Origin: Orbicella franksi
Taxonomy: Eukaryota
Reading direction: 5' to 3'
Assembly: GCA_964199315.1 (NCBI GenBank)
Contig: OZ116708.1
Span: 3,906,001-3,970,000, forward strand
DNA: 64,000 nt
In this document: positions 3,669 through 5,114 of the stretch, piece by piece
How positions within the stretch are numbered: the first letter of the stretch is position 1
Layout: each line of letters begins with the position of its first letter
Made by a program: the position numbers and the translations under genes
Notes under the pieces: model-generated
The model's database searches: none
Told to the model about the DNA's origin: nothing
Seen by the model: only the letters and a program-made list of their open reading frames with translations

Positions 3669-5114
3669 ATGGGAAACGTTCCAGTTGTCCATGAAGTGGG
3701 AACCAGTTTTTTATCACTTGGTGATGCCATTACTGGGCACCCAGAGAAAGCTCGAGAAAGATGGCAGACATACGCGCAAGAAAGTTTTGTTGGATCTTAT
3801 GTTGCCGGTGTTGCAGAAGTATGCAAAGGTAATCCGGATAAAGCAGAAGAGTACTTGAAAGGTATGGGTCGCGCAACTGGTAAGATGGTGCTTGGGGGAG
3901 GGCTCCTGCGTGACGTTCCCGTTTTTCATGAGCTTGCTGTTTGTGGAGAGTCCCTGGGAGATGTGATAGGTGGAGGAGACACCAAATCTGCAGAAAAAAG
4001 GTGGGAGACCTATGCAGAAAGCAGTTTAATTGGTGGCGGGATAGCAGCACTTGGAGCAAAAATTGCTGGCGACGATGAGGAAGCTAAAAAGTTTGCAAAA
4101 GGTTGTGGTAAGGCTGCACTCAGGTTTGGTGTTTCAGCTGCCGGGATAGCAGCCACTGCAGCCACTGGGGGGCTAGCAGCTCCCTATGGTGTCGCCGCTT
4201 CTGTTGCTACTGGGACGACAGTTGGTGGAGCGACGGGGGCCGCCTCAACAGCTCTGGTGCAGGTTATAGATAAAGGGAAAGTAGACGATGCTGGTGCGAT
4301 TGTTGGTAGTGGTTTGTTTGGAGGTGTTGTTGGAGGAGTAAGCGATGGGATTGCTGCTAAGAGGGCTGCCTCAAAGGCTAAAGCGCAAGCCAACAGGCCC
4401 AAGAGAGCAAGAGCAAACTCAGAGTCTTTATCGACCTCCTCTGAAGCGGAGTTTTTCCCTCAACGTTCTTCCACAACAGAACGACGAAACAGCTTCTCAT
4501 TTGAAGGAGGGAAAGCAAAACGAAACAGCGAATTTTCAGATGTGTGGAGTCCAAAAGACGCCGGCAAGAAAGCAGACGTTAAAGCTGCTAATGAAGCCGC
4601 AAGAGTCGACATTCAAGAGTCACTTAAAAATTGCAGTAGAAAAAGTCGTCCAGCCAAAACATCCGTGACCCAAGATGCGAAAGGCAATGCATATGGTACC
4701 TCATCTGTGAGGGGACCTAAAAGAGCTAAACTGCAAGATACTTTAGGCAGCAAGCAAAGCAGAGTCTTAGACTCCATCCCAGAGGAAGTCCGTGGTGTCG
4801 GGCATGGCAACTGTGCTGAGCAGGTTGCTGTGAATAACACACGTTATTTTCGGCAAAAAACCGGTGATCAGCTGTTTGCAAAGAACAGTAAAATAAAAGT
4901 GCAGGCATATGCACAAATGAAAGGCGTTAAAGGGGTATACAATGTCCCAGTGAAACCTTGTGGCTCGTGCCAAGTGGTTCTCAATGAGGTTGGCATTTCA
5001 CATAGTGCCACACCAGCAATACCCGTGACGTGTGATGCCACGGCCCAAATGATTGCCGCTGGTTTGACTGTTGGCTGCAAAGCGTGTCAACATTGCCAGG
5101 AAAAGAAAAACTGA
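3669..5114 (+). CDS. 481-aa intronless protein: tandem N-terminal repeat, Gly/Ala-rich hydrophobic segment, C-terminal CAE-type (YwqJ-like) zinc-dependent deaminase domain
   Basis: Long open frame starting AAAATGG, with a polypyrimidine tract and AG acceptor at 3639 in the 5' UTR. Motifs HGNCAE (H379, C382, E384) and PCGSC (C431, C434) have CDA-fold spacing. The internal repeat VPVVHE...LGD...A..RW.TYA.ES..G occurs twice. CDS existence is well supported; the family call is motif-based. Confidence 0.85.
   Translation: MGNVPVVHEVGTSFLSLGDAITGHPEKARERWQTYAQESFVGSYVAGVAEVCKGNPDKAEEYLKGMGRATGKMVLGGGLLRDVPVFHELAVCGESLGDVIGGGDTKSAEKRWETYAESSLIGGGIAALGAKIAGDDEEAKKFAKGCGKAALRFGVSAAGIAATAATGGLAAPYGVAASVATGTTVGGATGAASTALVQVIDKGKVDDAGAIVGSGLFGGVVGGVSDGIAAKRAASKAKAQANRPKRARANSESLSTSSEAEFFPQRSSTTERRNSFSFEGGKAKRNSEFSDVWSPKDAGKKADVKAANEAARVDIQESLKNCSRKSRPAKTSVTQDAKGNAYGTSSVRGPKRAKLQDTLGSKQSRVLDSIPEEVRGVGHGNCAEQVAVNNTRYFRQKTGDQLFAKNSKIKVQAYAQMKGVKGVYNVPVKPCGSCQVVLNEVGISHSATPAIPVTCDATAQMIAAGLTVGCKACQHCQEKKN

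Follow-up and report, generated by a model that had tools for sequence, protein, structure and literature searches.

Why does a coral genome encode a deaminase domain of the kind found at the tips of bacterial toxins, and what might an animal use it for? The question is raised by a 64,000-nucleotide stretch of the Orbicella franksi genome (GCA_964199315.1, contig OZ116708.1, positions 3,906,001 to 3,970,000), hereafter the window, to which all positions refer; it corresponds to 3.906–3.970 Mb of contig 11 in a 497-Mb, 805-contig genome. The window holds an uninterrupted open reading frame (ORF) of 481 codons, which an earlier note, made from the letters alone, had read as a toxin-like deaminase encoded by the host. 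We find a real host gene, spliced, polyadenylated, expressed and kept across Anthozoa, whose product carries at its C-terminus a ~175-residue domain that profiles and structural modelling identify as a deaminase of the YwqJ clade. This domain is preceded by an N-terminal module (the N-module) and a linker, and is followed by a short tail.

The residues expected of a deaminase active site are all in place. Within the ORF at 3669–5114, HGNCAE occupies residues 379–384 and PCGSC residues 430–434, which gives C382, E384, C431 and C434, just as the earlier note had located them, and RPAKTSV..D.KG..YG, which it had also listed, spans residues 327–343. Twelve full-length homologs, the most distant with 46% identity, all keep R327, H379, G380, C382, E384, P430, C431 and C434, and the H, C, E, C and C of the motif are invariant or nearly so across 51 sequences including bacterial toxins; because these residues are conserved across homologs, HGNCAE/PCGSC is not a chance motif. 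In the predicted structure described below, C382, C431 and C434 are the putative zinc ligands and E384 the putative proton shuttle. The CAE signature alone is not diagnostic of a toxin, because animals also have CAE-type cytidine deaminases. It had been proposed as a mark of toxin deaminases, which is right in so far as the YwqJ clade uses H or C at this position, but the prototype, Bacillus subtilis YwqJ, is itself HxE (PMC3239186; bioRxiv 10.64898/2026.09.29.755374). Iyer et al. 2011 (PMC3239186) list Gx[CH]xE in helix 2 among the features of the YwqJ clade, and the coral family has this feature, invariant, as G380-N-C382-A-E384.

Profile comparisons place the domain in the same clade. Pfam returned PF14431 (YwqJ-deaminase) as the best family for the query, at 17.1 bits (E 0.0065) with the whole protein and 19.9 bits (E 9e-4) with the C-terminus alone; 12 of 20 family members match PF14431 (best E 3.5e-6), and dCMP_cyt_deam_1 is weakly matched by 10 of the 20. 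An exhaustive search of 1.84 billion representatives with a profile of the coral domain retrieved just 52 proteins, and 24 of its 46 remote matches are PF14431 proteins (best 5.7e-20), including RHS-repeat, PT-HINT and intein-type toxins. Similarly, a profile made from 17 bacterial-type sequences and no eukaryotic ones found the coral domain with 83 bits (E 1e-27), and hhalign matched the coral to the bacterial alignment at 99.8% (E 2.8e-28). The bacterial set had been retrieved through the coral profile; as an independent check, 10 of 18 sequences were scanned singly, and nine of these ten match PF14431. Sequence searches of the PDB returned nothing significant. The domain is strongly basic, with a net charge of +14.

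An AlphaFold2 model of the domain, computed with a 51-sequence alignment, reached a predicted local distance difference test score (pLDDT) of 88.1, where an earlier run on 20 sequences had been poor (pLDDT 55.7). The model begins with a long helix and two strands, after which come a pair of inserted helices and then helix 2, which opens with C-A-E; strand 3 and an additional strand lead to helix 3, which opens with C-x-x-C, and a short strand 4 follows. The coral domain as modelled has the deaminase fold of the cytidine deaminase (CDA) superfamily. In the numbering of the model, C83/E85 open helix 84–99 and C132/C135 open helix 133–142. These secondary-structure positions, together with the alignments to solved deaminases, suggest that the three putative ligands and the Glu would come together in one pocket. 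Helices 52–59 and 62–70, the inserted pair, lie between strand 42–46 and helix 84–99, an extra strand (125–129) lies ahead of C132, and the confident model stops after strand 144–146, where the bacterial relatives stop too; the C-terminal tail, with its CxxCxxC, is modelled at low pLDDT. For the clade, Iyer et al. 2011 (PMC3239186) describe, besides Gx[CH]xE, one insertion that precedes helix 2 and contains a conserved His, another ahead of CxxC, and a domain cut short after helix 3 or strand 4; the coral model agrees with this description. An extended N-terminal helix and two additional central helices have been reported for YwqJ (bioRxiv 10.64898/2026.09.29.755374), and the coral model has both. 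The best structural match in Swiss-Prot is residues 458–602 of the B. subtilis toxin YwqJ (E 7.8e-4), and each of the 30 best AlphaFold-DB clusters (E down to 1e-7) consists of proteins of the 'YwqJ-like deaminase', RHS, Hint or intein kind, with most alignments falling at or close to the C-terminal end. All 50 of the PDB matches listed have a deaminase-like fold and nearly all are deaminases, led by blasticidin-S deaminase (Z 8.8) and cytidine deaminases, with scores from Z 8.8 to 5. DYW, ADAT2 and TadA are also among the structural matches, and no APOBEC appears among the top matches to Swiss-Prot models or to the PDB. The deaminase fold and the YwqJ-like affinity that the earlier note had put forward are both borne out by these comparisons.

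The tree of the domain bears on its origin. A maximum-likelihood analysis of 51 domains separates two groups with support of 100/100, the first consisting of 17 bacterial-type toxins and the second of 34 sequences, among them all the fusions with the N-module, a set of eukaryote-like proteins whose N-termini differ, and a single protein denoted P0094. Low-complexity regions and a location on gene-sparse contigs characterise the eukaryote-like proteins, one of which belongs to the dinoflagellate Alexandrium monilatum. This eukaryote-type group carries a motif just upstream of the core, F.F.GG.A.R...VW.P. P0094 is the sole bacterial-looking protein in the eukaryote-type subclade; it is 1505 residues long with the deaminase at 1037–1170, not at its C-terminus, and the eukaryote-type profile gives it 115 bits, the bacterial-type profile 64. 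Its gene lies on a contig of GCA_964538175.1 (L003:1-12518, 32–38% GC), directly after an ORF of >5000 residues with SecA-DEAD and P-loop_SecA domains, and an ISL3 transposase adjoins. This locus resembles the giant effector loci known from bacteria that live inside cells or as endosymbionts. P0094 could be the donor or the recipient of the eukaryotic form. Profiles, structure and tree support, as had been suspected, an ultimate ancestry of the domain family in bacterial toxins. Direct transfer from a bacterium to a coral could be the origin of the gene, with the coral domain sitting in a mainly eukaryotic subclade together with a dinoflagellate and one bacterial protein, and the route into Anthozoa could also have led via another eukaryote or via an endosymbiont-type bacterium.

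The transcript, the neighbourhood and the conservation of the gene all belong to the host. RNA evidence comes from assembled contigs of three studies (X1, X5 and the single-cell X12), at least one of them polyA-selected, from which expression levels and exact ends are approximate. Contigs X1 and X5 have 0 mismatches to the genome over the parts they cover, and X12 shows a polyA run after 5977. The acceptor at 3640, exactly where the earlier note had predicted one in the 5' untranslated region (UTR), is used from two alternative donors, 587 and 1067, both with GT..AG junctions. Since none of the raw reads of run X23 fell on the window, transcript ends are taken from the assembled contigs. Elsewhere in the window lie an ORF for the sperm microtubule inner protein SPMIP1 (36722–37315, + strand; E 4e-39), an ORF with a pair of EF-hands (35378–35986, − strand) and an exon with a fragment of the catalytic domain of a class I Glu/Gln-tRNA synthetase (42890–43357, − strand); such genes are ordinary for an animal, and their presence confirms that the context is the host's. 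The deaminase gene is single-copy in the O. franksi genome. Its nearest named protein is Orbicella faveolata LOC110039690 ('uncharacterized'), with a 99%-identical protein in the same cluster; orthologs at 81% identity, likewise annotated 'uncharacterized', occur in Acropora palmata, A. cervicornis and A. muricata, and the octocoral Dendronephthya gigantea has a full-length homolog at 46% identity. Pairwise ratios of nonsynonymous to synonymous substitution (dN/dS) against two coral orthologs are 0.15–0.21 and alike in every segment, the deaminase domain included, so that sequence comparison indicates purifying selection on every segment of the gene. Within 10 kb on either side, comparison with two coral orthologs showed nothing conserved except the gene itself. 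A loose first-look scan of the coral genome for the PF14431 family gave no match, not even at the known locus.

The N-module is as distinctive as the enzyme that it precedes. The N-terminal repeats noted earlier are real, a tandem repeat within the module showing 39% identity over 69 residues (E 1e-16, internal BLAST). The module is conserved in 35 eukaryotic proteins, with A149, G168 and G186 invariant across the family, and none of the 35 members matches any Pfam family, LXG, PT-TG and RHS included. A profile search retrieved 56 proteins, and all those that can be named are eukaryotic, with carriers in D. gigantea, the annelid Capitella teleta, the alveolates Prorocentrum cordatum and Chromera velia, and a chytrid. 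Residues 150–231 are 62% Gly, Ala, Ser and Thr, and the Kyte-Doolittle plot (19-residue window) has a maximum of ~1.4, with peaks at residues ~162 and ~220. The Gly/Ala membrane-type helices of the earlier note are thus present as a Gly/Ala-rich stretch, but one that is only moderately hydrophobic; the segments are possibly membrane-associating, judging from their composition. On this evidence the ~230-residue N-module is an undescribed, apparently eukaryote-only domain of two predicted helical repeats and weakly hydrophobic Gly/Ala-rich segments. Its C-terminal partners are a deaminase, RING-H2, vWA (in a Montipora 'cartilage matrix protein-like' protein) or unassigned regions, and this variation lies between paralogs and species, not between alleles or cassettes. 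The resemblance to the logic of polymorphic toxins is one of analogy only. A descent of the N-module from bacterial PT-TG was considered, on the strength of its 'D-x-P-V...G-D-x-I-T-G' look and of a protein language model that gave scores of 0.79–0.84 for PT-TG, DUF637 and LXG, weak values that profiles did not confirm; we dropped it, since there is no Pfam match in the 35 members, a genome scan for PF14449 was negative and the profile search found eukaryotes only. Other proteins with the module (window 3669–4373 in O. franksi) include P0040, P0044, P0046, P0053, P0057, P0066, P0184 and P0190.

The linker that follows has a net charge of ~+7 over residues 232–300. The C-terminal tail with its CxxCxxC is conserved in the stony-coral homologs and absent from the octocoral protein and from more distant fusions of N-module and deaminase; its cysteines may form a metal knuckle or a lipidation site. 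The coral protein has no signal peptide, and Pfam detects no known secretion or trafficking domain in it.

Comparison with known systems shows a known enzyme clade in a new lineage, as a new subclade and in a new architecture. B. subtilis YwqJ, a toxin of the type VIIb secretion system with LXG, PT-TG and PF14431, is of the same clade and fold as the coral domain and has in common with it a long helix at the N-terminus, two extra helices in the centre, the conserved His before the zinc ligand and a short C-terminus; YwqJ has HxE with C581/C583 where the coral protein has CAE and CxxC, and LXG and PT-TG where the coral protein has the eukaryotic N-module. RHS, HINT and Tc-type toxins with YwqJ-like tips were retrieved by the coral profile (P0119, P0121 and others), provide the top AlphaFold-DB clusters with their tips, and share with the coral domain the consensus RP...S.RG...LD.(I/V)P...RG.GHG.CAE...C.SC. 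Unlike the coral protein, they form the separate, fully supported (100/100) clade, are secreted by bacterial machines and have paired immunity genes. The dae/Tae amidases are interbacterial toxin genes that became domesticated in animals, and dae proteins are secreted. They represent the same theme, a domain of bacterial antagonism fixed and expressed in an animal genome, but dae/Tae are cell-wall amidases and secreted in the dae case, whereas the coral protein is by prediction a base deaminase and lacks a signal peptide. Among eukaryotes, Iyer et al. 2011 (PMC3239186) note YwqJ-clade deaminases in basidiomycetes only. These members are a precedent for entry of the clade into eukaryotes, and the coral subclade is distinguished from them by its inclusion of the dinoflagellate A. 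monilatum and by its own N-terminal extension motif. In the literature that we searched, YwqJ-like deaminases are bacterial (LXG, type VI secretion system and Tc toxins) save for this basidiomycete note, with no link to animals or corals. Closest in function, by analogy, are the AID/APOBEC-like NAD/SNAD proteins of cnidarians and other invertebrates, toxin-derived nucleic-acid deaminases with a proposed role in immunity (Krishnan et al. 2018, PMC5889660). These are members of the helix-4 division, have HxE and in some cases carry signal peptides, in contrast to the coral protein with its CAE and no signal peptide, and the APOBEC/NAD Pfam models gave no match to the coral family except for a marginal SNAD4 match in one member (E 0.12).

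What, then, does the protein do? We consider it probable that it is a domesticated nucleic-acid cytosine deaminase that works inside host cells, probably associated with membranes, as an effector of defence or genome conflict. The C-terminal YwqJ-type domain would deaminate cytosine in single-stranded nucleic acid, an activity suggested by analogy because B. subtilis YwqJ is a C-to-U deaminase of single-stranded DNA in which E539 is essential and which shows no preference for the 5' base and was inactive towards the RNA assayed (bioRxiv 10.64898/2026.09.29.755374). The protein would act inside the coral's own cells and not be exported as a toxin, since it has no signal peptide and its linker looks cytosolic; the N-module would tether the deaminase at a membrane, and the targets would be viruses, mobile elements or intracellular microbes.

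Several points weigh against this proposal. The scores of the query, 17–20 bits, lie below the PF14431 gathering cut-off of 25.9 bits, and the structural alignment with B. subtilis YwqJ shows just ~17% identity. Other members of the YwqJ family are reported to have given no DNA activity in previous screens (bioRxiv 10.64898/2026.09.29.755374), and substrates may for this reason differ within the clade. The hydrophobic segments are below the usual transmembrane threshold, which makes membrane association uncertain. Also, an immune gene engaged in an arms race would not usually be single-copy and under steady purifying selection.

A bolder form of the proposal, which we regard as possible but doubtful, is that anthozoans have for hundreds of millions of years kept a membrane-tethered cytosine mutator of single-stranded DNA, with bacterial contact toxins as its ancestors, as an APOBEC-like effector against viruses, mobile DNA and intracellular microbes or symbionts, and that the N-module with its interchangeable effectors (deaminase, RING E3, vWA) would be an undescribed eukaryotic family, the counterpart of polymorphic toxins. 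Whichever form applies, the gene extends a bacterial toxin deaminase clade into animals, where its long-term retention is clear, and is a concrete candidate for a nucleic-acid mutator, other than APOBEC, that cnidarians might use in immunity or to control symbionts and viruses. As a compact (~150 residues), eukaryote-adapted relative of a single-stranded DNA deaminase without 5'-context preference, the domain may interest base-editing work, and the gene flags an uncharacterised eukaryote-only module that recurs with different effector domains.

The same conservation could be read as a housekeeping or regulatory signature, and we think it unlikely, though worth weighing, that the enzyme serves regulation and not defence, with C or A in the coral's own tRNA, mRNA or small RNA as its target. 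Purifying selection and broad conservation fit such a role, other eukaryotes have turned deaminases of toxin origin into RNA editors, DYW being one case (PMC3239186), and DYW, ADAT2 and TadA were found above among the structural matches. However, B. subtilis YwqJ left the RNA substrate that it was given unchanged, the gene is distributed patchily and missing from most animals, and a membrane-type N-module would be unusual for enzymes of this sort.

Export of the protein as a weapon, with the Gly/Ala segments driving membrane insertion or unconventional secretion and with competitors, prey, allogeneic tissue or microbes as targets, is likewise improbable in our view. The bacterial relatives of the domain are delivered toxins, glycine-zipper-like segments do exist, and the N-module bears different C-terminal 'payloads' in different proteins, so the comparison is a natural one; the earlier note had gone as far as to see a delivered toxin in the layout as a whole. 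That part of its reading found no support, given that the N-module and its relatives are eukaryotic only, that signal peptide and known trafficking domains are lacking, and that the gene is single-copy and under purifying selection throughout. The dN/dS is ~0.2, and an alignment of 12 full-length homologs gave no indication that C-terminal cassettes vary among species. No immunity-like neighbour was detected either among the window's large ORFs, whose domain matches are all to animal genes, small adjacent ORFs not having been scanned against immunity families such as YwqK, SUKH or Imm6. The basic Ser-rich motifs of the linker suggest, from their composition, exposure to the cytosol.

We give still less credence to a deaminase of small molecules or nucleosides, like cytidine deaminase or blasticidin-S deaminase, serving in salvage or in the detoxification of a microbial nucleoside antibiotic. 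The best solved-structure matches are to these enzymes, the CAE..PCxxC arrangement is also that of CDA, and the weak dCMP_cyt_deam_1 matches in 10 of 20 members point the same way. Yet CDA and blasticidin-S deaminase are merely the nearest solved folds, because the PDB holds no YwqJ-type structure, and YwqJ toxins are matched far better, by predicted structures as well as by profiles (1e-7 vs 4e-3). The clade's inserts and its conserved His are present, the domain ends after strand 4 without the C-terminal elements of CDA, and the net charge of +14 suggests a polyanionic substrate.

Contamination from a bacterium or symbiont, or a dead relic, which a coding sequence (CDS) without introns and a mostly bacterial domain family might bring to mind, has a negligible chance of being right, and both the contamination and the pseudogene readings are excluded by the spliced polyadenylated mRNA, the large scaffold with its animal genes, the orthologs in RefSeq genomes of several corals and an octocoral, the intact ORF and a dN/dS of ~0.2, in agreement with the earlier note, which had also argued against bacterial contamination.

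The features of the gene are collected in Table 1. An in-frame TGA at 3663–3665, just 5' of the ATG, fixes the start of translation at 3669. A 503-residue form in the database (P0001) is explained by read-through of the upstream intron, and its frame is closed by this TGA in the O. franksi genome.

Table 1. Features of the O. franksi deaminase gene and its transcript, in window coordinates.
Feature	Position	Strand	Basis or comment
Non-coding first exon, variant a	352..587	+	RNA contigs X1 and X12; GT..AG joint 585/587 to 3638/3640; donor AAG/GTAAG
Alternative non-coding first exon, variant b	973..1067	+	RNA contig X5; GT..AG joint 1067 to 3640; 0 mismatches
5' UTR intron	588..3639 (variant b 1068–3639)	+	RNA joints; polypyrimidine tract and AG at 3638–3639
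Second and last exon	3640..5977	+	29-nucleotide remainder of 5' UTR, entire CDS and 3' UTR; RNA contigs 3638/3640–5326 and 5379–5977
Intronless CDS, 481 residues	3669..5114	+	ORF list; upstream TGA; dN/dS 0.15–0.21 against two coral orthologs
N-module, two tandem ~79-residue repeats, predicted helical (residues 3–78 and 82–156)	3675..4136	+	Internal BLAST
N-module, Gly/Ala/Ser/Thr-rich, moderately hydrophobic segments (residues 150–231)	4116..4361	+	Composition and Kyte-Doolittle plot
Basic Ser-rich low-complexity linker (residues 232–273)	4362..4487	+	Composition; length differs among species
YwqJ-clade deaminase domain, as assigned from profiles and model (residues 274–447), including the N-terminal extension of the eukaryote subclade	4488..5009	+	Pfam, profiles, hhalign, AlphaFold2
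H379-G-N-C382-A-E384	4803..4820	+	N-end of helix 2, with predicted first zinc ligand and catalytic Glu; the conserved His of the clade comes before them
P430-C431-G-S-C434	4956..4970	+	Predicted second and third zinc ligands at the N-end of helix 3
Stony-coral-specific C-terminal tail	5019..5111	+	Short hydrophobic stretch and CxxCxxC (C470, C473, C476)
(TTGA)n microsatellite in 3' UTR	5327–5378		RNA contigs break on either side
AATAAA polyadenylation signal	5957..5962	+	~15 nucleotides before the polyA site at 5977

Two further ORFs of the window are long and without a Pfam match, at 54217–55869 (− strand, 550 residues) and 16004–16717 (− strand, 237 residues). At an Acropora-type ortholog locus (L005), the deaminase gene is followed ~3 kb downstream by an ORF with a Death domain (14486–14812, − strand), and upstream of the gene there is a LINE-like (long interspersed nuclear element) pair of reverse transcriptase and endonuclease (2356–4802, − strand); counterparts of these two neighbours were not found in the O. 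franksi window.

Within the transcribed region, the 5' end of contig X12 near 544 resembles a template-switch oligonucleotide or cDNA adaptor, with a loose end before 543. The intron of the 5' UTR contains a short dispersed repeat at ~3395–3500, where several unrelated RNA contigs from three runs match over just 30–40 nucleotides and then diverge, leaving loose ends at 3427–3499.

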